From Aplysia californica (Eukaryota), in contig NW_004797931.1 in NCBI RefSeq assembly GCF_000002075.1, forward strand, positions 157,355 to 221,354: DNA of 64,000 nt. The letters run 5' to 3'. The position numbers were made by a program, and so were the translations under genes. Within the stretch, counting starts at the first letter, position 1; each line of letters opens with the position of its first letter. The notes under the pieces were generated by a model. The model worked only from the letters and a program-made list of their open reading frames with translations. It had not been told where the DNA came from and ran no database searches. Of the stretch, positions 3,137 to 35,363 are shown piece by piece.

Positions 3137-6100
3137 ATCTCCAATTATATATAATATCCCGAGGCGAAATAATCATCACTGGCTCTCAACTACATACCAA
3201 ACCTTTGAAATGTGTTCAGCATTTTTTTTATTCTTCTGAAAACCCGTAATGCAAACATACCTACATAATCGCGCAGAAACGGAGCACTCGTTCACCTCTT
3301 GAAAGATCAAAAAACTTTTCTGGCTGAATCCAGTATGTCCACCTCCAACTACATGGACCTTTCTTATGCTGATGAAGGCACCACAATCGATCAAATGCTG
3401 TAGAAATGTGTGCCGGGCCACTTTTAATTGTTCAAACGACCGATGTTATTGATTTAAAACTTGAATAGACTACACATTTTTGAAGAGATGCCGCGGATAT
3501 ATTAGCTTATTTCATGTTTGTTGGTTTACAAGCACTTCATACGAGGCACGTATTGATTGTTCAAACTTTACTGACTGCGGTAGATTCCAGTTTGATTCTC
3601 CGAAAGCACTTGAACTTTGTTTTGTTTGTGCAGTTCCCATGACTTTCCATCACCATTGCTCGGGGACTAGCTTGAAATAGGGTACTGGCTATTAGACAGA
3701 CGGTACACGGGCGTACCAAACCATACAGAATACAAGGACGCATGCAATCACTTACCACCTAATATTTATTGTGTGCTCGGGGCTTTGCATTGAGCCAACA
3801 CAACCAATTGATTTCCTTATTTTCATAGCTATCGATGGCGGATCGATTCGACCTTTGTGCTAACTTTCCCCGGGTATTGTCGGAAAGACGCAATGTCTCG
3901 TTAAGCCGGGCACTCTGGACACAGGCGTCTGTTGGAATGTTTGAACCTTCCATTACTGGAGTTTGTTCTAGCGCTTCTGCAGACACTTGAGGCAAACTGC
4001 AGACAGAAAAGGGACCAGGGAAATCCGAGAACCCACAAGGTTACTGTAGGCATTGTTGCGCGCCTGTCACTTTAAATGTCATTCAATAAAAGATGGAGGT
4101 AGTCATGCAGAAGTTTGATGATGATTTGTTCTGTTTGCAAAGTTACGAAATATGGTACCATTTACCTCTAAACAAACTGATGACGAATGACGCAAAACAA
4201 ACAGTAGGCCTTTCTTGGGAACAAAAATGTATTTGCATTTTATATTAGCTTATTTGAGCCTATAAAACATGCCTGTGCATAGGTACGCGAGAGAAAATAA
4301 ACGGGGTCATAAGTACGCAAATGCAAATACTTGTACACGCATAACATTAATTGGATCACTTTTGTTTCCTTCCAGCCTACAGACTGCAGTAAAAAAAATA
4401 ATAAGTTGCCGAATCAGAAGTTTACTGTTATTCATTTATATTTTTCTCTTCTTTTTTTTACTTTTGAAGGTAAAAAGGGGGAGGGGGTGAGGGTTGATGG
4501 GTTTTGGGAGGGAGGAAGGTCTTCGTTTTTCTTTTTCATTCTGTTTGAGTAAGGATCTAAATCGGTATCTGTTTGCGTTATGAAATGACCGCTTGTGAAA
4601 GCCGTTGTATGATTTTATTCGGCGCCATTTGCTTTTTTTCTGACAATCGTTAAACAAACAACAAGAAAATTGTACANNNNNNNNNNNNNNNNNNNNNNNN
4701 NNNNNNNNNNNNNNNNNNNNNNNNNNNNNNNNNNNNNNNNNNNNNNNNNNNNNNNNNNNNNNNNNNNNNNNNNNNNNNNNNNNNNNNNNNNNNNNNNNNN
4801 NNNNNNNNNNNNNNNNNNNNNNNNNNNNNNNNNNNNNNNNNGAGGTATTGTGGTGAAATTAGGCACTTGTCAAAATATGNNNNNNNNNNNNNNNNNNNNN
4901 NNNNNNNNNNNNNNNNNNNNNNNNNNNNNNNNNNNNNNNNNNNNNNNNNNNNNNNNNNNNNNNNNNNNNNNNNNNNNNNGGGCACTGTGTGGTTCCTAGA
5001 TCGATTATATTTTGCCAGACCGTGTCCGCGGTCGATATTTCGGCACGAAAGAGACAAGACTGGACGTTACAATATTATTATTGTATTCGGAAAAGGATAC
5101 TGGCCTACCTCACTGAGATATATATATATAAGATTTAATGTCACCAATTTACATGTTTGTTTGAGTAAAGAGTAGGACATCGATACGACTACTGTCATTT
5201 AAGTGTCGGGGAAAAGTTAAACAGAAAAACGGAAACAACAGAGGGAAAGGAAAATAGTAAGACATAGATCTACCAGTGGCACACTCCAATCACCCACAAT
5301 TTACAACAAGCATGAAAGACCTACAAATCTTGGTAAAAAGAACAGGTTGACAACAAAAAAACAAAAACACAGCAGCAGATTCTACAAACACCCGTTACCG
5401 TAGTTGGAAGAACCTCAAATAAAGAAAAGGAAAGAAATTAAGACACGTTCTTTGTGGGGCTAGGCCAACAATTACCAATTTATTTATTGCAAATAAACTT
5501 ATAATGCAGATATAATACACTGAAATTGATGTTGATGTGAAAGTAAAGGAGCCATAACTTAAAGAAGGAAAGTTGGAAGATGGAAGGGGATGTTGCATGA
5601 TTATAATGTTGTGGCGCACAAAAAAAATTCAAAGGTGGAGCACTTTACTTTGATGTAGGTGCTTTTACACCACCATTGACACAATTTAGATCGTTTTACG
5701 AGGCGGTTTCGAGCCTGCCTGATAGGGCCAACCCGGTTGGAGAGGCTAGGGACACAACGTCCCAGCAAAAAGTTCGAGATACTCGATTTAATTCTCGCTA
5801 CACGGGATTCGAACTCAGGTCTGCTCCGTGCGACGAAGAAGTGCCCAACCGCTACACCACAGACGTCGGTCGTGAAGAACTCTATCACTTTGTCCTGAGA
5901 TAGACCAAGAAAGGGCACGCGTATAACTCAGTTGGTGTCTTGCTGCCTTTTGGTGAAGATGACACTGTTTGAATCTTTTCTTTACATATGTGAAGCGTGC
6001 TTACAAAATGAGTAGCTTCTCCTATTCTATCCCCTTGGGAATAGGTACATCACGCTTATAGGTGGAGTTTTTAATATCTATAACTATGAAATCATAAAGG

Positions 6101-10689: not shown

Positions 10690-11475
10690 TTTTTATGGCG
10701 CTCGCAACTGCGTGGCTTAAAGGCGCTTTTATGTAGATCTATTTGAGCGCGCGAGGCACATCAAACATTTTCAGTTGGTAGGAAATTTTGAATTTTGCCC
10801 GGGTTGCGGCCGAAGCCAACTCCTTATCAATTTTGGACCACCAAGGAATCTTTAAGTGCGCAATCAGCACACGAGACCTCCGATATTTTTCGCTCTTATC
10901 TGAGAAGTCTAGGTGTTAGATCTTACCTACCGAGATCTACTGACCACAGTGAAGAGACGAAAACTAAAATGGTATGGGCATGTCACAAGATCCACAGGAC
11001 TTGCCAAAACAATCCTGCAAGGAACCGTACAAGGAAAGAGAAAGAGAGGAAGGCAGAGGAGATGGGAGGACAACATTACAGAGTGGACAGGAAAGACGAT
11101 GGGTGACAATCTGAGGACAGCAGAGGACAAAAATAGATGGCGAGAGCTGGTTTTCCAGTGCAGTGGGGCCCCAACCACGGGATAGAAGAAGAAGACCATA
11201 AGGTTAGGGATGTGGCTGAAAGAGCAGTAAGAACGAGCAAAAGGGTAGTTAGCAGTAGAAAAGCTGCAGAAAGAGCCATGAACTTAAGAGTTAGAGGAGG
11301 GGGCAAGGGGCAGAAAGAGGAAATGAAAGCAGGCGACATAACATTGTTAGAGAGCAGGAAAGGAGGTGAAAGTTAAAGGAGAAAATTTAAGAATTTCCAT
11401 CGCTTTCCAGATTCCAACGCGGGACCTATTGAGTGAGAAGTGAACACTGTAACCTCTTGCCAACGGGAGCACCCC
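10690..11475 (-). mobile_element. Diverged copy of the same SINE, interrupted by an RTE LINE fragment
   Basis: Collinear with 59535-60039 except for the 10930-11195 insert. Confidence 0.75.
10930..11195 (+). mobile_element. RTE-clade LINE 3' fragment
   Basis: DLLTTVKRRKLKWYGHVTRS...GTVQGKRKRGRQRRWEDNI followed by a (GAA)n tail. Confidence 0.85.
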
Positions 11476-15627: not shown

Positions 15628-15634
15628 TTAACTC
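15628..15634 (-). CDS. SRSF3: SRSF3-like terminal coding exon (G AGT TAA) opening the 3'UTR
   Basis: Strong acceptor CCCCCATTCTCTCTTTCCAG|GAGTTAA completes ...RS* in the correct phase. Confidence 0.75.
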
Positions 15635-18600
15635 CTGGAAAGAGAGAATGGGGGTGTACAAGGTTTTTAAAAAGTGCAACGGAAGACCAATAAATATTTG
15701 TAAAATGTAAACTCATTTTCAAATTCATTAAGTGCTAGGGCAAAAATAGTTTTAGAGGTAATAATGAATTTAATAATAATCGAGAGATCATTTCTAGTGT
15801 CCACTCCCTGGTGACCTTTAGGCACTTGACAATAAAACAAAATTTCAAAAGCTTATACCACGACCCATTCAAGGTACGAGCTGTGACAGGATATCTCAAT
15901 TCTGTACAGTCTACTGCATGAGTGAATCAGGAAACCCAACTGAGCCCCAAGTACTGCACACTATACTTTGAACACAATGTAGCACAGGACAGTATTCTGT
16001 CTATAGTTAGATGCATACATTGCACAAACAATGAAAGCTATATAGTTCTGGAAACGCGCAAAGAATAACTTAGCGTTCATTTAGATTCATGGAGATTCGT
16101 CATGTACCAGTCAATAGCCAGCTATACACTCACAGCTGCCTCAACTGCAGATTGCCACCTCAAAGGCAGGCATGCACTTTTCGAAAAGAAAAAAGGATCA
16201 ACAGACAAGAGAACCTATGCACAGAACAGTTCCATACAATACTGAGCACCCAATAACTTTGCTTCTCTATTACGTACTTAAATATTTGAAAGCCTGCACA
16301 AATGCAAACAAGTTTCCAGCAAATTACATCAGTGACAATTGGGACCATTAATTAGAATTTCTGAAAAGCAATAAGTAACCTGAATGATTGGGGCACTTTT
16401 ATTCATGTGAGTTCAAAAGAAGCGCAGTGACAACATTAAGTCACTTATGCAGTGCTTCCAACAGCTGAAGATGAAAAGTAAGGAACATTTTGTCTGGGGT
16501 CCAGGGACAGCGTCCCGGTGTGGGTTCAGGGAGCGAAACCCCCGAAGAAAATGAAATTCAGTACTTTTAGAGGGTTACAAATGGCATTTGGGAGCCTGTT
16601 TGAAGAGAACACAAACAACCCATAACATCTATTTTTTTCATCTAGATTATTGCTCAAAGTAGAGTAGTAACTTGAATGGCTCAATAGTGTGAGAGTTGTA
16701 AGAAAAACACACCGCCAGCAAAGAAACAAAACAATTTTAACACACCTAGAACTTGATCAACAGAATATACAAAGTTCAGCTATGGTTAAACGAAGCACAT
16801 GGTCACAATAGTGATCATAGTGAAATACAGTGGAAACCATATATAACAGGCCCGGTTAAAAGTTATCGGCAATAACAGGGCCTCACCGGAGCCCAATTGA
16901 TTATAGTAGGGACAAAGGCTCGTTAACAAAGTGTAAAAGGTAAGAGAGAGGGAGAGAAACACACAGTGGGTGATGTGAAAGAGGGCAACGGTGTACTGTA
17001 GACTTCGATCTAGCCTTAAGCCTAGCTACACGCACGCGTAATATGTCATGCGCAGGCCATGGGGAACTACCCATGAATAAATACAGTTGGATTAGTCCAC
17101 AAATGCTTACTTCCCTTGCTTTTCTGATTTAACACGGATCTGATATAACAGGACTTTTTCTCTGGTCCCATCATCCCTGTTATATCAGGTTTCCATTGTA
17201 TTGGCCATTAAATACAGATAACAGGCAAGACAGCCAAACAAATACAAGAGGAATAATAAAGCTTAAAACCCATTAGTGGCACCTTCCACGACTTACAAAT
17301 ACAGCATAGATGTATAGCCAGATCAGAACCAAAAACAGCTAGAACATGTCTCAAGGGATCTGTTAATAGAGTTGTGCTTCCATAAATAGGAAAAAGAAGA
17401 CAAGAACCTGACAAAGACCATATAGAAGGAAAAAAACAAACCCCATAAAACCCTGATAACACCAAACAATTCCTTCATGTTCAGCAGATTTCTTATCAAG
17501 GGAAGTTGTAATGCAAAGAATAAAATGGGGGGGGGGTAACATTTGAAATCCTTTCCAAGTCAAGGTCATTTTGTGCGAAATGCTTTCAAGTGAAACAAAT
17601 TTTACTGTACTTGCTGTTATGCATTCACTCACCTGCTCCTGCTCCTTCTCCTGGGAGAGCCTGAGGCACCTCGACTCCTGGATCGCCGACGGGGAGAGAA
17701 CGACCTGTACAGAAGAAAAGCAACACGATGGATTAAAACAACACTTCTCATAATAACTTTAAATCCCATCTACACAGAAAGAAACACAACATAAATTTCC
17801 AACATCAGGACGTCGGTGGGACAATTCCTAAAGGAACAACTCTGAAACATTGACAGCATTAGCAATATGACATACTACAACATGCATCTAGTGGGAGAAG
17901 CCTGACATGATGAAAGAAACTCAGCAGTGGACAGGAAATTCATGGCTAAAAAATACAATCCCATATATCCTCAGGTCCAAGTTGAGCAAAGAGCCTGTTG
18001 AGGGTTTTTTTTTAAACCCCCTCCTAAGGCAAACTTGTGCCAAATTCAAAGATAAAGTGCAAGAAAATCAAGCAACAGTGAAATCAGAAGCAACATGGTG
18101 GAAAAGAAACCAAAAGAATAAGACAAACTGACATTTTTCTTGCTTGGATCTGGGAATGTATACATGGCAACCTTGAGGGGACCTACAGGCTCAATTTTTT
18201 GGTCACCTCACTGTACATCCATTGTACAAAGTACAGTACCGTTACCAATATCTCGTTGATCATAAGTTCATGCACGCCTTTACAATAAAACACTGTTTGG
18301 GGGGGGGGGAGAGATAATTACACATGGACAACTATTCGAAAACTAAAAACACTGCTTCTTGAGAAATATAAATGTTTTTAACTTGAAAGAAGCACAACAA
18401 CACAGTAACAATCACACAATACCAAGTCACAAACAAATTAAAAAATGCAAAAAGTGTATAGACAAATAAAAAGGAACCCACCAGTGGTACTATCCAGTAA
18501 TCATGAAAGAAAAGTAACCTTTGGATGTCAATAGTATCGACTTGTAATCAATCATCAGCCAAGACGGCAAAAGCAACCAGCTTGAGGACTTTCAGTGGAT

Positions 18601-21600
18601 TTATACATAAAACATTGTACAAAGGGAACAAATACAGATGTTAGAAATAGGCCGCGAAGAAAAATAGCCCCAGCATTCTGACAACAGAAACAGAAAGGCC
18701 AATCTTTAGTCCAGTTAACCATACCGAAAGCCTTCATGTTCTAATTCAAGAAACACAGCAAGAGGAAAAAGACGTAAGCATGGGAAATGGGATGAGACAT
18801 GGTTTGTGGAGAATAAGCTCAACGTCTTGGAACACAATATGATACCAGACATGCTGAAAGAAGTAGTAGAACACTAAAACACTAGAGGGGCTCATCTCTC
18901 ACACACCCACACACAGAAAAGGAGAAGAAGAGAAAAACACATCTTTAATGAAGGTGTTTTTACGTCCCTAGATAATTTAAGAGATGGGCTTCCAACCCAG
19001 GCTGAGAAGGATGCAACATCCTAGTAAAAAAACCTAGAGCATTATTTTATCCACATATTTCTATTGTTAACCCTCTGCGTGCGCATCACGAGCACTGGTC
19101 GTGAAGACTCATACCTCTCTTCCGCGCGCATCGCGACCACCGGTCGTGATCTGACATGAGGGTAGAAACTATACTGCTGACATGAGAATAGCAAATTTTT
19201 TTAACTGCTGGTTACTACAGTCAACCAGTGCAAGGTTTATTAGTGTCGCTGGCCGCGCATTTCGCAGTTGGGGATCGGTTTGGAGTTTTTTATCGGCAAT
19301 TTTCTGGGATATTATTTAGTTTTCAAAATGTCGGATTCGTGAGCTGATTTCCACAGATTTACCCAACATTTTTCTGGAATGGGACGACAGTGATAAAGAG
19401 TTTGGATTAGGTCCTCAAATAAAAGATTTAGATCTACATGTGAATGATGGGGAGGTATTGTGTTGTAGATCTAGCGAGGTTAAGCCCAGAAGGGGACGTC
19501 GATATTCCTGCTGATCTCCAAGCAGGCTGGCCTAAAAACGATGAAGATTTTGATACCAACAACAACATCATAAAAAACTACATCTGACCAAACATAAGGG
19601 TAGTTCATTATTTAAGACACATTTTTCCTTCTTACTGTAATTAGAAATCATAAGAAATAAGAAAGACCCACTTTTATATCACCTTCAATGTTTTTAGTTC
19701 TCCCCCCCCCCCCCCCCCCCAGTACCCTCATATTACAATCACTCATTTTTCCAGCACTCGGAAAACTAATTAAAAAATCTGATAAAAGGGTGTCCCGTTG
19801 AAAGAACAAAGTATTGGGTAACTTCTAATTGAATATGTATACCGATGCAAAATAAATGAAAAGCATAGAAAGTGAGATGAAAAGAGGCTGATATTTGTGA
19901 ATGAACACTGATTTGCATTATAAGTAAAAAAGAAAAAAAATCATTTGAAACCAAACATTCACTTCACAACACCAAAAACAAGAAACAACAAACATTATCA
20001 AGAACACAAGGGAACACACAAGTTACTGTTGCTCTCATCTGCCTGACAGAACAGAATCTTCACACGGCACAATAACCTCCATTATGATTCACCAAGCGAA
20101 AACTTGGCCTTGCCACTTACGTTAGAGATATACCCAACAGTCTCTTAAGTTTGAAAAACTCATTTTCTGGCAAACACCTTTACTTAAGGTCCCAATCATG
20201 CATACTAGACTGAATCCTAAAATACGGAATCAATTTAAAAGACAAAAACCATCTGCGTCTGATCTGCATCCCTTCTCTTCCAACGCCCCAGCATTTGGGC
20301 TATACATTTTACCCGAAGGAAAACAAGGTCAAATTCATTTGTTCATAAGCAGCAATAGCTTAGGATCTTGTTCATCCACTCTTTCTGCTATCTCCACATA
20401 GCCTACACTTCTCTGTCCAGTCTTCAGCTGCAAAATAGCACCCGCTTGTTTCCATACACACGGTAGTTTCCTCATGCCTGACAAAAACTGCCACTTTTCA
20501 TGAAAGACTTACATATCCAATATTCTGCGAGCTGACAAGTTGATTCAAATAATGAATGATACTGATAAAAGTGAAATTCATGTTACGAAATTTTTCCGGC
20601 ATTCCGAAATGAGCAAATTTAGAAAGCAGAAAAGACCTGAATGTGTATCAGGAGACGTGATGAGGATGAGCAAACTATAAAGCCAACATAATAATACCAG
20701 CATACCGTTTTACAACGAAGAAACTGTTGACGGCGGAGGAGTTGGTTGATGATGATGATGAAGATGAAGTGGGTAGGTGGAGGGCAAACGGAGAAAGACT
20801 TCTGCCCTGTAGACGCCCCCATGGCTTCGGCATATGGACTCATCCACATTCAAAACATTCCCTTCTTGTGGCAATAACTACCTATTCCTCCCACCATTAA
20901 TAACAAAACTGTAGGTAACATAAGCACTTGCTGTAAGGATGTGCCTAGATTCATAGCTGCTCATAGTCCAAATTAATGTGCCTGATTTTTCTACTTCAAA
21001 GCAGTTATGTGGGAGAACTTCCCAACATTGACAATTTATCGCTTGACTCACCCCTGCCTACTTCTTACAATAGAACACGTTACTCAGCAAATGGAATTTT
21101 TCAAAAATTATAAAACAAACCAGAAAAAAATATTAACACCCCTCCCCAGCTAGGACGAAGTTTTAGGACCAGTCCATTGCTTTTAACACATGGGGGTGGC
21201 GAGCAGGCAAATGTCCACCCTTAACTATAAGGGTAGGGGCCCCGAAGTGTTGGTTGAGCCTAGCTGCGGGGATGCTGAGCTGGCTGCAGGGGGCTAGCGC
21301 GGAGCGCCGAGGCAGTCCACACTGGCATGGGGAGCCACAACCTTAGTAGCTGAGACGGTAGGGGTAGTGGTAGGTAGAACATGTAGTAGCAGTGGTCTGC
21401 CTCCACGAAGGCCAGGGTAACTTAACAAAGGCCGGCGGAGGTAGAAGCAGAGGCCGCCTCCTTGTGAGGTTGGTTGATTGGTTGGTTGGTTGATTTGATG
21501 TGCTAGTAGCAGTTAAGTGAAGAGGGTGGTGCTAGTAGTAGTGGTGGTGGTGGTGGTTGTTTTGGAGCGGCGAACCCTGCACAAGATGATGACGGAGACC

Positions 21601-24600
21601 CTGCGAGAAGTTACATTCAGAGAAAAGAGCATCAGTCAAACTGGTAACTCCTAGTTGCTACACAATATTTGGCTGTGCACTGCACATTTACCACTTACAG
21701 AGTGAAAACGGTCACTATATCCACACAGAGACCAACATCAAATACACATCTTTAAACATCAAAACAATGAAGGCACAAGAAAATAGAAAAATGTCAAAAA
21801 AACCTATACTTGAACTTGCATCCGAGCACACCTCCTCATCCATCAAAGAGACCGCCAAACGTTCTACCTACAGCAAAGTTATTCTGTCAATAATGACAAG
21901 CAATCACGGTTGTATAGATTACAGCAAAGAAATAGCTCAAACACACAATATCAAATGAGTTAGCGCAGTATCCGATATCTCGCATTCTATCTTTATACAA
22001 ACAAAAAAAATTTTTTTTAAGGATTTGGTTTCCAAATCCGAACACTGTTATATCCCATAACCCCATCAATAGACAGCCACCCTAATAAATATTTTCAAGC
22101 TACCCATTTAAATTTTGATGAAAGCAAAAGAGGGACGACAAAGGTACGACATTCAATTCATATTCTTAAACGGCATGATATAACATAAACACAAACCTGG
22201 ATCTGCGGCCGCTGCCGCTTCTGTAACTGTCCCCATACTGTTTGCTGGTTCCCCGTGGAGGTCCCCTATTGCCCCATCGTGAACGCCCAGATGACATTTC
22301 TATCCGCACTCGTCGACCATTGATTTTGCTGAAAGTACATACAATACACCCCCACTGTATACACAGCTTGCCAATAAATTTAATAACTGTAGGGGATTCC
22401 TCAACAAAGCAATGCACATAACTGTTATAACAGAAGTAAATACAGTGGAGTCTGCTTAAATCAAACATAACCGTAAGAAAACAAAACCCCAATTTTTTCT
22501 TCACTTTATGAGCAATTTCTTAACACCAAAACCACAGCTAAATGGAAGAAAATCCAGCAATCCAGCAGATTTTAGTTTAAGCGAACTCAACAGTTCATTT
22601 TCTAAACTCTTTGTTATAGTAGAGTTTTTATGGCACTCGCAACTGCATAAGGTTATATGAGCACCAAGGGGTGGTTTGTTTTAGTAAGAATTTTACGTCA
22701 CTTGCAACACAATAAGGTCATATAAGTGCCGAAGATTAGGTGTTACAAGAGAGAACAAACACAAAAAGAAGGAGATCAGGACGATAGATGTTCTATACGA
22801 AAGATGGAGCAAACCACACCAGAGCACCCGCGAACTACCCACTAGTGGTGGATGTCAACAGAGAAGTCCTACAGGGAATCAGACTGACTCTGCTCACCTC
22901 TCTAGCTTTAACAGCACAAAGTCTGCTTCCACTATCAAGGCACCCCGGAAATAGCGAGTCACAAGAGTGTGACAAAAACATACAAAAGAAGTAGAGGAAA
23001 ATTGACGATAGTAAGGATGAGGAAAGATAAAGCAGCAGTTCCCTGTTGCAATTTCAGCACAGTATTGAGCATGACATCAATAAATCAGCCCATAAACAAC
23101 TTTACTGTGCAACAGAACATGGAAATGTCCCCCCTTTGGGAATGGCCTAAAGACACTTCAGTCAGGGGTATTAAACTCTGATCTACAGTCAATGAAAGTA
23201 CAGCTTATTGTATGGTTATTTGTTATATGATATTAGTTCATATTCTCTGTATGTTATGTGGTGTACCCCATATTATTTCATGTTATGTTGTACCTGTATC
23301 ATTCATTGTCCCTGTTAATCCGTGTTCACAGATGAAATGATCATCTACCGTTTATAATAAATGAACTACACTGAGAAGTCTTTCTTCATGATGATTTCAT
23401 ATCAACCCTCGGTACGATATCCAATGTGAGAATGATCTCACTAAGGGGCCTTCTTCTCCAGACACAAACAAACCGGTGCCATGCCCTGACTGCGGGAAGA
23501 AATTCAGTGTATTCAAGCAAAGGGAAAACGGCTCCTGGAACACTAGACCCCACACAAAATGCATCAATTGCTGGCGAGCTAGTCGTCACAGAGAAGAGCC
23601 TACATCTCTCAGCTCCTTGTCGACTGAGCCGGCTGTGTCCCAGATTGGTGTGGTGGCTCTGCATCTCGAAGTGATCTCCAAAAGTGACCTCAAAAGGTCT
23701 AAGAGCTCATGCCATTCTCGTGCAGAGCTCTGCATCACAATGGCCGGGCTCAAGAAGAACACAAACCAGCCTGAAGCCCTTGTGAGAGGTATCGTGGACA
23801 GTGGGGCCATGTCAAACCTGTGGGGCCTAAAGAACTTCACTGACAGTGGCTTTTCAAAATCTGACCTTCTGCCTGTGAATATGGACATGAGGGCCGCTAA
23901 TAAAAACCCCATAAACATTGTTGGAGCCTTTAATGCATTAGTTAAGGGTAAATCACCCATTGGTGAAATTATTGCTAGCACATGCTTGGTGTACATATCA
24001 GGCTGTGTGAATGATTTCTTCTTGTCATATGACACTATGCTTGATCTATGCATCATTGATAAATCTTTCCCTACAATTGGTGCATGCATGAACAAATGTT
24101 TTGGGTCCCCACCCAGCAAACAAACCAGAAAAGAAAGAGCATCAACAACATGGTAGGTCAATTAATTCTGGTTGCACTGGTGAGGAACAAAATGAGCACA
24201 ATTGCAAATGCCCTCAGCGAGAGTCCATACCCCAAAGACCCACTTCACTGCATTTTGCTCCTATACCGGAGAACAATGAGAAAATGCGTGATTGGCTGCT
24301 GGAGAGCTACAGTAGGTCCACCTTCAACAAAGGCTCTTGCCTTGCATGACAAGACCCCCTGTAAAAATACATGTTGAAAAGACTGCCAAACCCAAAGCCT
24401 GCCACACGGCAGCACCCATACCCCTTCACTGGCAAGAGCAGGTCCATAAAGACCTGGTGCGGGATGAAGCTTTGGGGGTAATAGAGAAGGTCCCCTTCGG
24501 AGTGCCAGTTACTTGGTGCCACCGCATGGTAGTCACAAGGAAACGCGATGGCAGCCCAAGGAGAACAGTCGATCTCTCACTCCTCAATAAATTCTGCAAA

Positions 24601-27600
24601 CGAGAAACCTTTTCAGCAGAAGCCCCTTTTCCCCTTGCGAGGCGCATCCCTGGTAAGACATGGAAGTCTGTCACTGATGCGTGGAATGGCTACCACAGTG
24701 TGCCACTAAGAGAAGATGACAGACACCTCACTACTTTCATATTTCATAACCCCATTCGGGAGATGGGGGTACACTCACGCACCACAGGGTTTCCTTTCTT
24801 CAGGGGATGGATACAACAGACGTGAGTACGCGAGGTATCGCGAGTCCCTATATGCCTTGGATGGTGTCATCCTCTACAGAGATAGAATTGTCATACCATC
24901 TTCCCTAAGGAAGACCATTACTGAGGGCCTTCACCCTGCTCACCAAGGAGTCTCATCAATGGAGATATGGGCTCAGTCCATTGTGTTCTGGCCAGGAATG
25001 ACTAAGGACATACAGCATGTTCGAGCCAGATGCACGGATTGCAACAAGAATGCACCGTCTCAAGCCCAACTTCCTTCAAACCCTGCCCACCCACCTTCAA
25101 CCCCGTTCGAGAAAGTCTTTGCAGACTTCTTTGACTATGGAGGCTACCACTATCTGGTGATCGGTGACCGTCTGTATGGGTGGCCCGAGGTTTATTCCAC
25201 CCCCACAGGAAGTGCCCATGCTGGAGCAAGAGGCCTTATAGCCTGTCTACGGAAATTCTTCGCCACATTTTGGGTACCAGAGGAGTTGTCATCAGACGGC
25301 GGCCCTGAATTCACTGCCTGCCAGCCAAACAAAAAACTTCCTGTCCACATGAGGTGTACACCATAGGAAATCGTCCGCATACCACCCACAATCCAATGGG
25401 CGTGCTGAGGTAGCTGTCAAATCTGCCAAGCACCTTCTCAGTTCCAACATCAACCCCTCCGGAAGCCTCGACAGCGACAAATTCTTGAAAGCCCTTCTGC
25501 AACTTAGGAACACCCCAGACCCTGATTGCAAGCTTTCACCTGCCGAGATTGTCTTCGGGCATCCGATCAGAGACATGTTCTCTTTTGTGAATAGGCTTGA
25601 AAAGTTCTGTAATAAAGCCATACAGCCCATTTGGAGAACACAGCGGTTATAGAGCGCCCATTTAGTTTCGGCTGGCGCGAGGCAAGCAAGCCCGCGCTTC
25701 CCCAGGTCACGGGGTCATTTACCTGCGCCGCCGGGGATTTCCCTAATCAGCCGAACACCGGCAGCGCTCTTGTATTTTTTGCAAAGTTTACCAGCACAGT
25801 GAGCCAAAGCTAATGTAAGATGAATATTTTAATAAAGACCACGTAAATATTCAACATATTAAGGAAGAAAATGAAGAAATCGGAAGAACATGGTACATTA
25901 CACTTAAAAGCTGTGAAGTTCTCAAAAAGGGGACTTAATTTGATAAATGTGTCATGGGTAATCAATTATAAACATCGATTTAAATATGAATGCCCCCAAC
26001 GAATTCAATCAAATTTGCACACAGGACTGAGAACATAATGAAATTTGTACTGACAAAGGGGCATATGCACGAAGTTTCTGGATCCGTAATTATTCAGGTT
26101 TGAAGTTGATTTTTGCAATACTCTTGCTTTGCGACCTTGTTTTTTCATAGCGATATCCACGATACATGTAACTACAGGACAGATCTTTTCTTGCCGATAC
26201 ACTTATGAAAACACAACCTAAACACAAAATACAAAAAGAACACAATATTGCTGGACTGGAGGAATTATCTCATTTTTCCGCTGTAAGCTTTTGTCTTTTG
26301 ATGGGTGGTGCACACGACAGAGTAGCTCAGAGTGGGTTTGGACGTGTTGTGACTGCATGATTGTTTTGACGTGTTTTTCTTTGTCTGTTAGGCCACGGTT
26401 GCATGAATGAGATCACCCCCTTGCTCACAATGGAAGGCCATTCCAAACCCACATTTTTGTATCCAAGGAACGCAGTGTTTCTCAAGGATGTGTTGTTTGG
26501 GGATGACCTTTTCTTTTGATCGATTTTGATTGAGTAGCACATGTTTTACGGCACTATCGACTCAAGACCTTTTATTTACCAAATATGTTTCTGTATAAAG
26601 ACATATATCGTGTGATGCATGACTGAATATGTGGTATTCTCTCTAAAGTGATTGGCTTTCCATGTGCAATTACTGTGTGGATATCTTTGAAGGTGTCTTT
26701 TACGTGAACAAATTTCTCTCTCAGAACAATTAATGCAGTGTCTATTATGCTTTGATTTCGTGTACATGCAACTGTTCCTTTTGCTAAAAATGATGCTAGC
26801 TGTCTGTACACATGGGCTGTGATGAATTTATGGCAGTGGCTTCCTATAAATGAACGGCTGTTGTAGGCCTGTGGTGTGATGTTGTGTTGTTTGAGGATGT
26901 TATCAAATTCAGAGCAGGCAGGACTTGACCTTGGAATAAGCTCCTCAAACTCTAACTCTGACAGCTGATCATGTACACTAGAACCCTTCCTCTCAAATCT
27001 CTCTGCTTCTCGTGGATTATCCGACAAAATCTGACAGCCCTGTAACAATTGAATGTCCTCCTCGTTTTTTCCCAGCCCTCTTTCATTTTTTGCCATAGAT
27101 ATGCACATTTTGTCCTATTCCAGGCGTGCAATTCTCCATAGATTGATGGACCAGCTGTACATCTATATCATGTGCAGCCTCCTCAAGAAGGCGATGATGT
27201 TTGAGCACAATGCCCACCATATGATCATGTTGAGTGTGGCACTCCATGACAAAAATATTGTTAAAAATGATAACGAAAATCAGATGTAGTAGAGGCAAGA
27301 AAACTAAAAACAGCAAGAATGAATGTTCAGAGTGGTGGGTTGGTATTTTTTAAAAATCACAGAAAATCATAGAATAACTTCGTGCATTTGAAATTTGCAC
27401 ATGTAAATGAAAATTGTCACCACAGTTGATACATGAATTTCTGTTTAAATCGTTGGGGGCCGGATTGAAATATGGGTCATTCCACCCTTATGTGTACAAA
27501 AACGTGACATAGCACATCAAAATTCAAACTCAACTTGCTGCATTCCTATTTAAGGATTGTTTTGTTTAATATTGTAACGATCTTCATAGAAAATCTCAGA

Positions 27601-30600
27601 CCTGTACGGTGAACCATGTTTTAGAAAATTGATGTTTTCATTATGCAACACTCATTGTCAGAATTGTGACGTGGACGTAACAAAATTGCCAATAAATAAC
27701 AAATGCAATGTATTTTTCAACTGGTAATGTCAAATGTCCTTTTATTAAGCCATTAGGAAATGGAAAATATGAGAAATTTTAAAGAATTATTATAAGAAAT
27801 GGTAATTTCAAAAACAAAATGTCAGAAATGTGACTGGACAAAATTAGAAGAAAAAAAAGTTGACAAAAAGTTTTTACACAGGATGCAGCTGTAAGCAAAT
27901 CTGACCGAAAACCTACTTAAAGGGTCCATTAGTAAAACATTAAAATGACTTGTAAAGAAAAACCCATGAAAAATCTGAATGAATCAGTCTTAATGGGGGG
28001 AAATGGTTTTTGTCCTAATTGTGACATGGACGAAGTAAAACAAATGTTTTTGTAAATAAATTAATAGTTAATGCTTTAAATCTCTCAAAACCCATGGACT
28101 TCCTTAGTTCACAGGTTGACACAATGTGAAAAGTTTTTTAAAAACCTGAAAAAATCAAATGGAAAAAGAGAGACGAAAAACGAATATTTTCGTTGCAAAT
28201 GTGACGGATAAAAAAACAAGACGATACAAAGGTCAGCTTTTCTTACACCTTATATTTATCAGTACGGTACTAGCATTGTAAGGAGCTAACACTCAATTAT
28301 AACACAATTAAAATGGGAATAAACATTAAACCTACGTCAATTTATCAAGTCGTACAGTCAAGAATTTCCATCGTAGAGTAAGGGTAATTCTTAAAATATG
28401 CCTATATGGTTCCACATGGACAAATTGTGTTAGAAAGTTCCGTATTGAGATAGGGAAAGAAATATTGAAGGGCCTGTATGAATGTTTAGGTCACTTTTGA
28501 TATGTTTTAGAATCTAGAGGTCTTTTGCTAGTGAATACCACAGTCTTTGTGACTTGTCCCACCCCTGTCTCTTGACTTCGAAGTGAGATATTGTCGTTGC
28601 TATTTTTTCTCCTGCAGAAGCAGTCGAGAAACTAAAATGGAATCAACTAAAGCATTGCCAAATACTGGCATAAATGATCTTATGGCTTTCATTCAACTGA
28701 CAAGATTTTTTAAAAATGAAATTTAAAATAAAGACAAAATATTGGGTTTAAGAAACATTCTCTGCGGGGCATCAAGGGTTGGTGCATCTACCAAAGAAAA
28801 AGTCCACTGCTGGCCAGGAAAGGTACTGTCCATTTTTTCTACAAAACTTTATCTGGGCTTCACCCTCTTCAGTTGCAAGGACCTGTGGAGGAGACAAATC
28901 AAAATTCAATGAAGTCTTTCAAAGTACAGATGAAACAAAAAAGGTAGACTAAAGAAAGTTGCACGTCCGTAGTTCCTCTTTGAAATTAAATACAATTTTA
29001 TTTGTGACCAGTAGTGACCGTTGTCTGTGATGCAATGGCTAATCTCTTCGCCTCTTACGCAGAAGAACCGAGTTTGATCCCACATGGGGACAAGCATCTA
29101 TCTTTCTACTGGGATTCGTCCCTCTCACCCCAGGTTGGCCCTGACAGGCAGGGTCGAATGCGAAGGATGTAAAACAAAAAACCAAACAAAACCAGTACTG
29201 TTGTCAAAGGCCCATGTATCTTTGTCATTGATGCAGTTGCTGTCATGGTCGGCCTACCGGTATCTCATTCTTTGCTTATAAATATCAATGCGTGTACTTA
29301 CTTCAGCCAATGGATCACTGAGACGAAACTTGAAAGATAGTGAATGGATAGAGGAAATTCCATAAACAAGCTGATCCTTCATGCATACATATGGGCCTAC
29401 ATATTTTAATTTATGAAATGATATGTTTCATACAGGAACATAGCAAGACAGCCAACCTTCTTTCTACACCTAAAGAGCCACTTAGTTTATTTTACCACTA
29501 CACAAGAAGAAAGAAAAGAAACTAAACCCACTATATCAATCATTATTTCTTTATAGTTCTAGCCCCAAATAGTTTTTCATTCTTTGGTAGCTTCTAGACA
29601 AAGTGAAAGCCTTTTTTCTCAGAAAGCTGAAAGTACATAATACCAGACAATACACCACAAAAAAAAACCCAAAATATAACAGTATTATTTAGGGCTAGTC
29701 ACTCAGAACCACACACTACATGTTTATTTTTTATCCCAAGAGATGGTGCAATAGCACAAGATGAATATGAAAACTCATTTGCCAGAATTGTGACACTGGA
29801 CAAAAAGAAATTCTATGTCCAGTCACAATTGTAACATTTGTGTTAAATGAAGCCAGAACAAAGGGAGCATTTTACTGTATGAACCTTTCATGTGTAAGTT
29901 CTTTAATAATCACTGGTGAACAATCGAAAACTTTGTAGAAAGCAAAGTATGTGAAGATGGAATGCTGTTTTCATGTTCTAATCAGAAATGTGACACTGGA
30001 CAAAGTGTTGCCTTTTTTTTCCATTGTCACATTTTTGACAAACTACTGAAAACGCTTGCAATTCAATGCAATATGTCTTAATAAAGTAGAAAAATCTGGA
30101 ATTATATCTCCAACACAGCTCCCCTTGTGAATTGAAACTGAATTATGAACAAGTGGAGATCAATAATGAAAAAAACCCACTACTTTGTGTGTGTGAAACG
30201 TGACATGGACAAAAATTAAAATTGTGTCCAGTCACAGTTGCAACAGTTATAGTTGAAAATTCAAACGTTTGGAGAGGAAGACTAATCTTTTTTTTTTCAG
30301 AATTAATTCTGCTACTTATTTACTACTATTCATGGATGAAATGACTGCAATTATGTCTTAATTTATAGATAAATGATACATTTTTTTTAAAGCCACAATC
30401 GTGACTTGGGACAAAACAATGTGGTTGTGTCTTTTATGTCCATGTCACGTTTTTAATATTTTTCACACTAAAATCTATTTTAGACTAGAATTCTAAGTCA
30501 AAAGCTAGGTTTAAGAGAAAAACAAGAATTTGTCCGTTATAGTTGAACTGTCTGCTGTTAGCTATATCGCAACTAAGTCTGGACTTGGCTGAGAAGAGAT

Positions 30601-33600
30601 ATTTTGTTTCAAACGGCCCTCAGACATAAAAATTGTTTTTGTCCACAGTGTAATGTCACGTTTGTCACATAAAGTAGCAATGACCACGAAAATCCTTTTT
30701 TTGCCAGAAAATGTTTGCAAATAGGTGCATTTTGTAGCTTTATCTTCACTGAGCATAGAACTTTTTGAATTTTTAAAATCCATCAATAAACAAAAAAGTT
30801 ACGGATTTTTTAATCAATTAATTTCTGGTACACTTTTATATAATGAAAAAAACCCAAAATATGGGACGTTCTTTGGTGAGTTTTGAGACATATTCGTCAT
30901 AACTCTCTCATTTCTCTGAGTATTTAAAAGAAACTTGGCAACCCAGTACATTTTCTAGTGCAGAATCTAGTCCTGCTTTCAGATTTTTCATAGCTATCCC
31001 ATTTTTTGAGTTATGAAGACGTTTATAGGTAAAAATGTTGGCCTTTTTCGGTGCGTTTTGAGACAATATTTGTCATAACTCGCCTATTTCTTGGAATATG
31101 TAAATGAAACTTGGCAGTCTAGTACATTTTTTAATGCAGAATTTAGTCATGCAGTCAGATTTTTAATATCTGTCATACTTTTTGAGTTGTAAAGACATTA
31201 ACAGGTAAAAAAGTGGCGTTCTTTACAGATTTACAAAGATTATCAGTCATATGTTCTCCCAAAGTCATGATATTTGAATGAAACTTAGGCAACATAAAAG
31301 GTTCTTCCTTGCCAAGCAATATTCTGGATCAATTTGTCACAAAAATGTAAGTAGAGAGCTACTAATAAATCCAGTTTTGTACTAGTAAAAGCATGCATAC
31401 TTTGTTATAGAAAATAAGATCGTCTCTGTGTATATCCATTGTTGGACAGTGTCCTATTGTGTGGTAGATTAAGATGCGTTCAGATAAAATAGTTTACAAG
31501 TCATGGGAATATTTCGCATGTGTAGGCTACAACTCATACAATAAATGTAACATATTTACACCCCCCCCCCCCCTTCTCTCTCTCTCTCTCTCTCTCACGC
31601 GCGCGCACTCACGCACGCACGCACGCGTGAACGATAACAATGTATAAACGGGACTATCTTCCCAGACTGGACTAAATAAGTACCATACTCTTTAATAACA
31701 ATCTTAATGCCTCACTTTTCCCAAACAGAGCACACAGGACGAGTCCAAGTGTGTGCTTTCCCAAGAGGGGGGAATAGGCTTTCATAACGCAAACACAATG
31801 CCATACCACTTCTCAAGATGTTTCCTTTTCTGTTTCTATTCTTCTGTCATGCAATCAAGCAAATAAAAATGACTACATCTATTGTATTGTGACTAAAATG
31901 CAACAAAAACGCAAGTTATCAAGGCCCCCGTTTAGTTTTCAAGTATCCTTCCCCCCCTTTCCATTTCACATAAGCGGGGCCTCGTTTGTAGCGCCCGAGG
32001 CGACCGATGGCTGATGACGTCACTCAGTGGAAATTTCCACGCCGCCGGCCGTTCACCCAGCATGCGCAAATGGCAATGTCGCTTTTTTCCTTAGTTACTC
32101 CCACATTTTTAAAGATTACGCCAAAACCGCTAAACACAGAAGCATGAAATTTTAAGGGAATAAAGAAAAATGGTGTACAACGTATCAGTCAGTTTGACAA
32201 ATCACAGCTCCGAAAAACCTTCAAAGCGCACCACATCAACCACTTTCGCAAACGTTTTCGACTGCTTCTAGGATGGGTACAATGTTGTCAAACTGCATAC
32301 TACGAGATTGACCTCTTTTCTGATTGGTTGCCAAGTTTCATTCATATCCATTCACGAGAAGCGGCGTGAGAGCGAGTTGAAGACAACAACCTTTGCGTTA
32401 GTGCGTCCCATGAAACACCCCCGCTGCGGGGGCCAAAAATCGGCAGAACAAAATGCGCTCGGTGGGCATTGCTACATAAAGCCACATCCAACATATTCTT
32501 AACCTGAGAATGTCTTGATAAACTCTGGGTGTAGCACTGTAGACCTATTTTGAATATTGTCAAAACGGAATAATCACGAACGATTGTTGTAGACTCTATG
32601 TTCAATAAGATTTGTGGCAAACCGCAGCAAATGTGACTCTGGACATAAATAGTGTTTATGTCCAGTTTGGGGGGAACTGCTAGAAAGTAGCCACTACCTT
32701 TAAAAATTCTCACACGGAACTCGTAGTATTAAACAATTCAAATCACCAATAGAAAAAAAATCACAAAAAAGCTATAGTAAACTTCGTAGTAAGTATAATT
32801 TTGCTGATAATATAATCATTTTTAGTCAGAATCGGGACATTTCATCCAACTTGTCAGAAACGTGACAATGACAAAAAGTCTGGACAAAAACAGAAACCAA
32901 CCTGCCATGGGGCTCTCCATTGTAAAATGGCTGCGCCGAAAGCAAAAATTGCTGGATGAAGGGAAGTGCTCTGCCGTCTGTGACATAAAACGCATACAAA
33001 AGTCAACTCGTCATGAAAACAGATAGCGTCCTAAACGTGACATCGGGAGGAAAAACGAAGTGGTTCATTCCCCGGTCAAGAAGAACACGCGCATACGCGT
33101 TTCGTGGCGTTGGTTCTGACCTCATATTAGAAAGCGTTGCACATCCTTTTGAGGAAATAAACTGTTTTGTACACATGATTTGAATCTTGAATGTAATTGA
33201 GTCTTGTATTTCACGTTGATTTGGGACATAAGAGGTCACGTTTCTGACACATTTTTCTAATGCTTATTTTGCTTCAAAAGACCTTTTTTTTTTTATTGCG
33301 TATATTGTATCTTGAAAAAGATTCATTTGTCTAAATGGCAAATATTTCATCAAGCAAATGAAAGCAAGGAGAAAGGAACAGGCCAACTAATTTCTAACCC
33401 ACCTTATGCATGTCACATTTTTTCCTTCAATTTTTTCCCTTTTACGTGAGTTAAAAGGCTGGTATCTAATTAATCCCATGTTGTGCTTAAATTCCAGATA
33501 GGACCAGGTTCTTGAACCATCTATCTGGCTTCTGGAGATAGTTTCCACATCAAATCTTTATTTCCACTTATTTTATGGGCTAATTTCAAAAGCATATAAA

Positions 33601-35363
33601 AACGTACACGTTAGGGTGGAATGACCCATATCTAAATCCAAACTGAAAAAGTTCTAAACATTGAAGATGCCAGTTTGAAAATCATCGACTTACTTAAATC
33701 CCTTGTAAAACTGATATAATCGGACTTACAAGAAAACAAGTTATACCGGCCTACAGGTCAAACATAGCACGTTACAATGAAATCTCAATCGGCCTTGTAG
33801 CATTTATAGTTTCAGAGTTAGGAGGCTTTCAATTTGCACTAAAACGCCATATTTACTACTGCCCCGGCACAGGAGGAGTGGCGCTGCGGTCACCCCAATT
33901 AACCCCTCTGACAAGTGATTTATGACTACGCGCTGGGCTGTCGGGCGGGGCGGGCAAGGTGGTGAGGATGGTCGGGGAGGAACCGGGGAAGGAAAACTAA
34001 GTGAGCGGTCTGGACGGTATTTTATCCGCTGTGAGAAAGGCATGGGCAGCCAAGGAAACCGCTACGGACAAGGTTTGTGAAAACATCTGAGAAGTTCAAC
34101 GAGCACTCAAAAAACCTGCCCAAGATGTCCATTGGGGACAGATGTTTTGTCCAGAACCAGACTGGCAGTAGCCCTAAAAGGTGGGACCGAGCAGGATTGG
34201 TTGTCGAAACCGGCCCCAATGACCAATACATGGTCAAGATTGATGGCTCAGGGCGGCTGACGTCAACAAACCGGCGCTTCCTTCGCCAGTTCCAACCTGC
34301 CACTTCGACCATACAACCGGCACCGGCACGTAACAGCCCAAATGACTTTGAGGTTACTCTGCCTTTGGAGGAGGAGTTCCATACGGGACAAGAGTATGCG
34401 ACTGAGCCAGTCAATGAGGAGCAAAGGATTGCCCCAAGCCCTTCCCCTCAGCCCCAACCCCCAGAGGCACCTCAGGAGGCAAAGAAAAGTCTTTCCGCAG
34501 CCCTGAAACGCCTTCTCCCACACAATAAAGAGGGGTTACAGGAAGCGGTCAAACCTCAGGAGCAGGGGGGGGGAGAAAACCAAGGGGGGTTAGGAAAGAT
34601 CTGAACATGCCATGAACTTGGGGGGGGGGATGTATGGTTATTTGTTATATGATATTAGTTCATGTTCTCTGTACGTTATGTGGTGTACCCCATATTATTT
34701 CATGTTATGTTGTACCTGTATCATTCATTGTCCCTGTTAATCCGTGTTCACAGATGAAATGATCATCTACCGTTTATAATAAATGAACTACACTGAGAAG
34801 TATTTCTTCACTAATTAATTAAAAGCAATCTTGATCGAGACTGAAGTATACCTTTTTCGCTCAAAGAACTGGTGACTTTTCCCAGCCTTCAAATATCCTA
34901 CAAAGACGAATTTTTCCTGAAATTAAATCAATCGTACAACAAAAAAAACCCTCAGATCCCATCACTTTTCTAAAATTCAGTGGTAATTGTATTTCATTGT
35001 ACAACGTTCTATGTAAAGCAGTTTCATAAAACCTGGATTCTCTTGAATCTAATCGATAATTTAATATATATTGCAATTAAAATGCACTTTGCACCTGACA
35101 GATGTTTTTTATCTACAAAAGCAATGATTAAAAATTCCAACATACGATCCATCCAGAGCCCTCACTGCATCTTCTGCATCTCTGCTGTCTTCAAACTCGA
35201 CAAACGCAAAGCCTGGAGGCTTACGGGCTACCCATACATTGCGCAGCTGGCCATATTTGGAGAACTTTTCTTCAAGTTCTTGCTTTGCGCAGCCATAGCC
35301 CAGATCGCCTACATACACCTTGCAGTCCAAGTTCCAGTCCCGCATGGGAGCGTTACGAGACAT
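15628..35363 (-). CDS. SRSF3: SR-family splicing factor, SRSF3/SRp20-Rbp1-like, 142 aa; join(complement 35146..35363, 22197..22328, 17633..17704, 15628..15634)
   Basis: Spliced translation [22 protein letters not shown]...[33 protein letters not shown]|[17 protein letters not shown]...RRSR|[24 protein letters not shown]|S*. It has the typical SRSF3/7-Rbp1 RRM and an RS tail with no CCHC knuckle. All introns are GT-AG and phase-compatible (218+132+72+7=429 nt). Confidence 0.92.
16828..17198. mobile_element. Tc1/pogo (Tigger-like) MITE
   Basis: TA|CAGTGGAAACC...ATAACAGG and CCTGTTAT...GGTTTCCATTG|TA. Confidence 0.75.
17633..17704 (-). CDS. SRSF3: SRSF3-like coding exon 3 (RS domain)
   Basis: CTTTTCTTCTGTACAG|G acceptor, encodes [23 protein letters not shown], donor AG|GTGAGT; 72 nt. 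Confidence 0.9.
21052..21600 (-). other. Alternative premature-stop (poison) exon of the SRSF3-like gene; tandem acceptors at 21600 and 21576
   Basis: Acceptors TCGCAG|GGTC and GTGCAG|GGTT, in-frame R(VSVIILCR)[20 protein letters not shown] with TAA at 21513-15, C/A-rich body, candidate donor GG|GTGAGT at 21050-51. Same relative position as the vertebrate SRSF3 poison exon. Confidence 0.75.
22197..22328 (-). CDS. SRSF3: SRSF3-like coding exon 2 (end of RRM, start of RS region)
   Basis: Acceptor TTTCAG|C at 22329-30, encodes [19 protein letters not shown]...SGRRSR, donor AG|GTTTGT; 132 nt, phase 2/2. Confidence 0.93.
22610..23170 (-). repeat. Dispersed retroposed repeat (copies at 7085-7850 and 57065-57360) with a second family inserted at 22675-22842 (copies at 11610-11780, 11975-12138)
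   Basis: Multi-copy similarity within the window and a shared 3' tail ...CATATGACCTTATGCAGTTGCGAGTGCCGTAAAAC. Confidence 0.7.
23209..23388 (+). repeat. 5' LTR
   Basis: Direct repeat of 34631-34810, 177/180 identical. Confidence 0.95.
23476..25638 (+). pseudogene. Gypsy gag-pol remnant (Cys/His motif, protease, partial RT, integrase core), frameshifted; the integrase C-terminus resumes at 34034-34604
   Basis: ORFs 23476-24156, 24337-24825, 24716-25366 and 34077-34604. Removing the insert and one TSD restores ...[11 protein letters not shown]... Confidence 0.88.
26398..27240 (-). pseudogene. Decayed Chapaev-type transposase C-terminal half
   Basis: Motifs [28 protein letters not shown] and [37 protein letters not shown] (RAG1/Transib-like HxxxxH...EQGxE segment), with stops and frameshifts. 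Confidence 0.78.
27474..33627 (-). mobile_element. Sola-like DNA transposon nested in the Chapaev element
   Basis: TIR GGGTCATTCCACCCT(T/A)A(T/C)GTGTAC at both ends, 4-bp TSD ATAT, many dispersed TGTGAC(A/T)TGGAC-type subterminal motifs, and a transposase C-terminal-like remnant ([17 protein letters not shown]) at ~28760-28885. Confidence 0.75.
30675..32474. mobile_element. 1.8-kb non-autonomous TIR element with 7-bp TSD (hAT-like TAG termini), nested in the Sola-like element
   Basis: TAGCAATGACCAC...GTGGGCATTGCTA termini; TSD CATAAAG at 30668-74 and 32475-81. Confidence 0.8.
34631..34810 (+). repeat. 3' LTR
   Basis: Direct repeat of 23209-23388, preceded by a polypurine tract. Confidence 0.95.
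35146..35363 (-). CDS. SRSF3: SRSF3-like coding exon 1 (RRM; exon spans 35146-35375, ATG at 35363)
   Basis: Acceptor TTTCAG|CGCC at 35376-77, RNP motifs KVYVGDL and PPGFAFVEF, donor TC|GTATGT at 35144-45. Confidence 0.95.

Follow-up and report, generated by a model that had tools for sequence, protein, structure and literature searches.

The poison exons of SR protein genes are textbook examples of splicing feedback, and work on them has centred on vertebrates, flies, worms and plants; in flies, going by the title of a 2005 paper, Kumar and Lopez reportedly described negative feedback among the SR factors Rbp1 and Rbp1-like. The closest described systems are the poison exons of vertebrate SRSF3 and SRSF7. 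In the mouse, cross-linking and immunoprecipitation (CLIP) clusters of SRSF3 lie in the poison exons of both SRSF3 and SRSF7, over-expression of SRSF3 makes inclusion of either exon more frequent, and the products are stabilised by cycloheximide (PMC3439968). The poison exon of SRSF3, exon 4, measures 456 nucleotides (nt) in human and mouse and carries a stop codon that yields a product of 124 amino acids (aa) out of 164; it is 100% identical between the two species and 92% identical to coelacanth, and the same source gives as SRSF3 motifs UCAUC, CUUCA, CAUCA, CAUCU as well as UCAAC, the consensus (A/U)C(A/U)(A/U)C and CACCACCACC (PMC10321290). For fly Rbp1 and Rbp1-like, a further study mentions low-abundance, temperature-dependent isoforms (PMC7726792), and an evolutionary study of SR poison exons treats SRSF4/5/6 and names SRSF3 once (PMC4379411). 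Judged by titles and the opening lines of abstracts, none of the papers listed on poison exons and molluscs deals with SR genes. Here we describe a candidate counterpart from the mollusc Aplysia californica, on the minus strand of a 64,000-nt stretch of genomic DNA (the window, to which coordinates refer unless another locus is named), where a first-pass annotation had proposed an autoregulatory poison exon of an SRSF3-like gene at 21052-21600.

We find that this stretch is part of a spliced RNA that exists beside a form skipping it, and that the borders of the exon are wider or more complex than first drawn. The exon most likely corresponds, in this mollusc, to the poison exon of the SRSF3 type, and we lean, with moderate confidence, towards the reading that it is a self-limiting poison exon with feedback as in vertebrate SRSF3 exon 4. 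The assignment of the host gene as SRSF3-like was confirmed: it is an SR gene of the Rbp1/SRSF3 type on the minus strand, and its 142-aa product, the Aplysia "RNA-binding protein 1", has an RS tail and lacks a zinc knuckle. The peptide encoded by exon 2 is an RRM (Pfam RRM_1, E 7.2e-18); among solved structures it lies nearest to the SRSF3 and SRSF7 RRMs (E ~5e-24; 2i2y, 2hvz, 2i38, 9asq), and it is 100% identical to the NCBI protein 'RNA-binding protein 1 [Aplysia californica]' (P0001). Together, the four exon pieces of our gene model give the full P0001 sequence, and P0001 represents the exon-skipping form. Exon 3 (22197..22328) encodes the end of the RRM and the linker and ends in phase 2 (..TCC AG|) at ..AGATCCAG|gtttgt, and the constitutive RS exon occupies 17633..17704; the intron between these two exons would harbour a non-coding exon, used optionally and some 0.5-1 kb long.

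The evidence that the candidate is present in RNA comes from sequencing runs. All 54 words sampled from 21052-21600 are present in 18 runs from six studies, among the runs listed, and four runs were mapped on 17500-22400, namely X1 (contigs), X9, and X22 and X23 (raw polyA single reads). In X1 a contig that covers 22195-22328, with its joint mapped to 17702, joins 22197 to 17704 with GT..AG ends at a depth of 27.3, which is the productive, exon-skipping form; a separate X1 record covers 17632-17705. Another contig from X1 (997 nt, depth 7.85) runs unbroken from 21673 to 20706 and is then spliced to 17704; it holds the whole candidate exon in one continuous segment (20704..21673, minus strand). 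Its joint maps as 17702>20704 (cut +2), with CT..AC on the plus strand and hence GT..AG on the minus strand, and the donor it uses is ACG|GTATGC at 20700..20708 (exon end 20706). Because this contig joins 17704, where both X1 joints arrive, the stretch is part of a spliced RNA. The exon-containing contig reaches roughly one quarter of the RS-exon junction depth, and over the rest of the intron the X1 depth is 0 in most bins, with exceptions of ~1.9-5.7 at 17891-18261 and 19546-19652. Run X9 has an even depth of ~58 and no spliced joints.

Two in-frame acceptors 24 nt apart had been predicted at the upstream border of the exon, and both are present on the minus strand, with their AGs at 21602-21601 and 21578-21577. 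They form a candidate tandem (21576..21602), ..cttctcgcag|G for an exon starting at 21600 and ..cttgtgcag|G for one starting at 21576, each preceded by a pyrimidine-rich tract. A third acceptor, 21672 (cacag|CC), was considered because the X1 contig ends there; it was rejected as the main site because its pyrimidine tract is poor and because no overlap with exon 3, as its use would predict, is present in the contig. The prediction that the exon brings an in-frame stop in place of the RS domain also holds, in that the tail translated from 21599 is low in complexity (T9) and reaches a TAA at 21515-21513, the first in-frame stop from either of the tandem acceptors (21513..21515). The proposed donor fared less well: the sequence GG|GTGAGT is indeed there (21046..21053, exon end 21052) and resembles the consensus, but as a border it is bypassed, since the X1 contig continues past it to the donor at 20706. 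Furthermore, this 8-mer has three matches in the window against 1.55 expected, a number not beyond chance.

The coding consequence is the same whichever of these borders is used. A stop is reached after 7, 29 or 21 codons from acceptors 21672, 21600 and 21576, respectively, with donor 21052 as well as with donor 20706 (6/6 pairs), and the distance from stop to donor is 461-945 nt over the three acceptors, the stop at 21515-21513 lying 461 or 807 nt before the donor. The 967-nt stretch contains 8-17 stops in each of the three frames. Inclusion is therefore predicted to remove the RS domain and to leave a stop far upstream of two exon junctions. A stop placed more than ~50 nt upstream of an exon junction is the geometry that triggers nonsense-mediated decay (NMD) wherever the rule is known.

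We also asked how far the exon body matches its description as rich in ACC/ACT/CAAC/CATC repeats of the SRSF3-type, and found in it the most C-rich block of the window, with motif counts above those of 500/500 shuffles. Sense-strand C makes up 8-19% of the 100-nt bins of the upstream intron, whereas it reaches 35-41% in the four bins covering 21596-21197, and the switch falls exactly at the 21600 acceptor. Indeed, the block 21600-21197 ranks first in C among 2476 windows of 400 nt taken from both strands of the 64-kb stretch. This block, A (21197..21600), has 38% C and 81 CNNC, contains (ACC)11 and (AACC)6, and carries CACCACCACC twice; a second one, block B (20706..20796), has 38.5% C, contains (CAT)7 together with CAAC/CTTCA, and directly precedes the donor at 20706. 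We counted the five published SRSF3 pentamers from individual-nucleotide resolution CLIP (iCLIP) and the motif (A/U)C(A/U)(A/U)C (WCWWC) from SELEX, and compared the counts with those in 500 dinucleotide shuffles. Block A has 9 pentamers against a shuffle mean of 2.55 and 15 WCWWC against 5.86, and block B has 14 pentamers against 2.42 and 10 WCWWC against 2.78, with 0/500 shuffles reaching either count in either block. An origin from a repeat was considered and rejected, the stretch being single copy in the 927-Mb assembly. No Rfam family matches the candidate-exon stretch, and a search of a representative library with the open frame 20849-20706 returned one unrelated low-complexity match, an uninformative comparison. 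Next in C content among distinct regions of the window comes 10951-11450 on the minus strand (33% C), located past the gene's 3' end as far as one can judge from the length of the X1 contig.

A comparable layout is found in a second Aplysia gene (G000:C66), which is SRSF7-like, with an RRM 65% identical to that of the first and a zinc knuckle (CYECGERGHYAYDC). Its knuckle exon ends at 4797 of locus L085 (..CGGAAGAG|gtatgt, phase 2), and in the surrounding interval, L085 4560-6560 (G000:C66:242560-244560), we recognise from the DNA sequence alone a candidate poison exon. Its acceptor (..tttgcag|A, ~5178) lies ~380 nt past the knuckle exon, a CA-rich block follows at 5200-5290 (33% C in 5178-5300 vs 14-18% around it), an in-frame stop is reached after 10 codons, possible donors lie near 5574 or 5601, and the RS exon is at ~L085:6490. 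In both Aplysia paralogs the intron interrupts, in phase 2, the R codon that precedes S.

Sequences from outside Aplysia show similar arrangements. On a bivalve-like metagenome contig (L017, 690-1760) whose exon 3 resembles a clam protein, an acceptor ~370 nt after exon 3 opens a C/A-rich stretch of ~540 nt, which contains an in-frame stop and is closed by a GTAATA donor. Two SRSF7-like metatranscriptome sequences, L042 and L043, differ by a 192-nt cassette (L042 505-696; 43% C) that brings a stop immediately ahead of the RS domain, and L053 and L044 are SRSF7-like mRNAs with and without an early stop before that domain. Both pairs come from a G+C-rich eukaryote. At the protein level, at least 7 of the 60 proteins read (P0012, P0027, P0037, P0038, P0041, P0046 and P0062) lose the RS domain right after ..RS(S)R, the end of the exon-3 equivalent. 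Four of these are oyster proteins (P0037, P0038, P0041 and P0046) with a common non-RS tail, L..Y.PSQSASS.L.P.QRLP, in which 15 of 21 positions are invariant; their switch comes directly behind ..RRRSR, which corresponds to ..GRRSR in Aplysia, and NCBI names three of the four isoform X2.

The oyster tails bear on the possibility that the main role of the exon is to give a stable truncated protein, composed of the RRM, the linker and a short tail without an RS domain, which would have a function of its own, rather than to destroy the mRNA. Such a role would fit the invariance of the 15 residues across four oyster proteins, the fair abundance of the included form in X1 and the finding that vertebrate exon-4 transcripts give some 124-aa SRSF3 (PMC10321290, PMC11193772). 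However, the low-complexity Aplysia tail (VSVIILCR) is unlike the oyster tail (L..Y.PSQSASS..) and the tails of other molluscs, the choice between acceptors 24 nt apart alters the tail freely, and the stop lies far upstream of two junctions. We therefore consider a primary role for a truncated protein improbable.

The proposal of a poison exon stands as regards the stop, the motifs, the spliced RNA and the intron before the RS domain; it is not supported as regards the 3' border, the join to exon 3 and sequence conservation, and a number of results weigh against it. Among the runs that contain the sampled words, none is recorded as RNA: by mapping X1 is RNA and X9 is DNA, and the other 16 are presumed to be RNA. 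Runs X22 and X23 gave 28 and 23 reads on the 4.9-kb stretch, mainly homopolymer repeats, with a depth of 0-0.5 over exon 3 and the RS exon, and are uninformative; usable RNA evidence comes from 1 of the 4 mapped runs. The expected junctions from 22197 to 21600 or 21576 were seen in none of these four runs, X1 being the sole usable RNA run among them, and in place of the expected junction 21052>17704 the X1 contig reads through 21052 and uses 20706. At its other end this contig extends 73 nt upstream of the better acceptor, to 21673, and carries no letters of exon 3. Its middle, 21196-20797, has an intron-like composition (15.5% C), and for this reason the RNA may comprise two exons separated by an intron that was retained. 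Part of the motif excess is due to short tandem repeats, namely (ACC)11, (AACC)6 and (TCA)7. Among the 120 proteins listed there is no Aplysia-identical protein besides P0001, and among the 60 tails read there is no Aplysia poison isoform; words of exon 3 are common to three proteins in the protein collection, none of them with an alternative tail. The rules of NMD are not known to have been studied in molluscs.

The hoped-for sequence conservation did not emerge either, in a blastn comparison with 84 other loci or in local alignments with three candidate counterparts. The whole intron gave just chance matches of 21-27 nt to the 84 loci (E >=0.09), and thus resembled neither the 80 metagenome loci compared nor the paralog. 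Local (Smith-Waterman) alignment of 21600-20706 gave a score of 24 with the L017 block, which was reached by 49/200 shuffles, of 25 with the L042 cassette (23/200 shuffles), and of 26 with the paralog block (4/200 shuffles), the last being a CA repeat; these are distant comparisons and do not exclude conservation within heterobranchs. The first-pass annotation had also seen a likeness to the end of the human poison isoform (RVS/RVT and STTL/LTTL), a putative likeness of about 3+4 residues, with the R fixed by the split codon.

These gaps leave room for the view that the stretch reflects splicing noise or partly processed RNA, either an incompletely spliced intermediate or a low-level cryptic exon, with C-rich blocks that are microsatellite-like and attract the splicing machinery. 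The missing 5' junction, a contig that starts inside the presumed intron, the intron-like 400 nt in its middle, the contribution of short tandem repeats to the blocks and the lack of demonstrated conservation would all be expected on this view. Yet the contig has a depth of 7.85 against 27.3 for the skipping form, with zero X1 depth over most of the intron outside it, all the sampled words recur in 18 runs among those listed, the composition switches exactly at a good acceptor, and the layout recurs in the paralog, in the bivalve-like contig and in annotated oyster isoforms. Taking both sides together, we regard noise as unlikely, although of the alternatives considered here it is the one that we weight most.

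The start of the second X1 contig at 21673 without exon 3 sequence could also reflect an internal promoter nearby, giving rise to a separate transcript that is spliced into the RS exon, in which case there would be no cassette exon; that the X1 contig from exon 3 to the RS exon is unbroken at 22197 fits this too. Contig ends are, however, poor evidence of RNA ends, and assemblers often drop short low-depth junction paths. Moreover, the strong acceptors and the switch in composition lie 73-97 nt inside the contig, and the acceptor-first layout is also seen in the paralog and in L017. An internal promoter is thus very unlikely in our judgement.

Returning to the self-limiting poison exon, we propose a mechanism in which the optional exon would begin probably at 21600 or 21576 and would end at 20706, the border seen in RNA, and possibly also at 21052. 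Its inclusion would stop translation at 21515-21513, before the RS domain, and the included mRNA would be unproductive, most likely as a target of NMD and otherwise as a source of RS-less protein. The C/A-rich motif clusters at the two ends of the exon are of the kind bound by RRMs of the SRSF3/SRSF7 family, and the protein of the gene itself, perhaps together with the zinc-knuckle paralog, may bind these clusters and promote inclusion, which would exert negative feedback on the level of the protein. In this scheme we infer the use of the acceptors, NMD, protein binding and feedback.

We also put forward a broader and distinctly tentative hypothesis, that a stop-bearing exon in the intron directly ahead of the RS domain goes back to the ancestor of all SRSF3/SRSF7/Rbp1 genes, which would make it as old as Bilateria or older. 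Selection on its position and on dense C/A-rich sites for the family's own proteins may have preserved it in the two Aplysia paralogs and in bivalves, flies and vertebrates, while its alignable sequence turned over completely outside vertebrates. If true, function would be homologous over a great evolutionary distance where sequence is not, and the 'ultraconservation' in vertebrates would be the late freeze of an old device.

The coding part of exon 2 (35146..35363, minus strand) has its start codon at 35363-35361, encodes most of the RRM and ends at ..GATGGATC|gtatgt, and the last exon starts at 15628..15634 (minus strand) with the normal stop codon (G AGT TAA), which matches the loose end of the X1 contig at 17632 and agrees with the C-terminus of P0001. 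Intron 2 (22331-35145) is ~12.8 kb long. The X1 contig with exon 3 has a loose end at 22328 that matches 35146-35175; since just 30 nt of it belong to exon 2, the assembly graph may branch where exons 2 and 3 join. A limpet isoform (P0017) skips the equivalent of exon 3 in frame, and on this ground skipping of exon 3 (132 nt, 44 codons) may also occur in Aplysia. When translation is continued from exon 3 into the intron (22166-22196), a short peptide results, and at the matching point a Logan-derived protein of another gastropod (P0012) has ..RSRFVFILLMTE.., so that conservation may extend into the first intron bases after exon 3, and relatives may have a second unproductive form in transcripts that retain the intron.

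An exon of this kind is already known and the finding would not surprise a specialist. A mollusc case with two paralogs and bivalve counterparts would nevertheless help to date the SRSF3/SRSF7 device, and it would show which features, namely position, stop and clusters of the protein's own motifs, are kept when sequence is not. For Aplysia neurobiology, it points to an unannotated isoform of a general splicing regulator.

Compared with known systems, the Aplysia exon is closest to exon 4 of vertebrate SRSF3 (SRp20), which belongs to the same protein family and is likewise an optional stop exon that follows the exons for the RRM and linker, is rich in the family's own binding motifs and removes most or all of the RS domain. 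The sizes differ, the human exon having 456 nt and giving 124 of 164 aa, whereas the Aplysia exon would have 525-895 nt and give ~137-145 aa against the normal 142. They also differ in that exon 4 is near-identical from mammals to coelacanth (PMC10321290), whereas here even between molluscs the local alignments did not exceed shuffles. The poison exon of SRSF7 (9G8) has a parallel in the zinc-knuckle paralog, with its candidate stop-bearing, CA-rich exon predicted between the knuckle and RS exons, and in the mRNA pairs L042/L043 and L053/L044, which differ in the presence of an early stop at that place. The link to Drosophila Rbp1 lies in the name 'RNA-binding protein 1' that NCBI gives to the Aplysia gene. 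Finally, the oyster RNA-binding protein 1(-like) isoforms X2 switch, at the same intron position, to a short tail that lacks an RS domain, and differ from Aplysia in the sequence of that tail.

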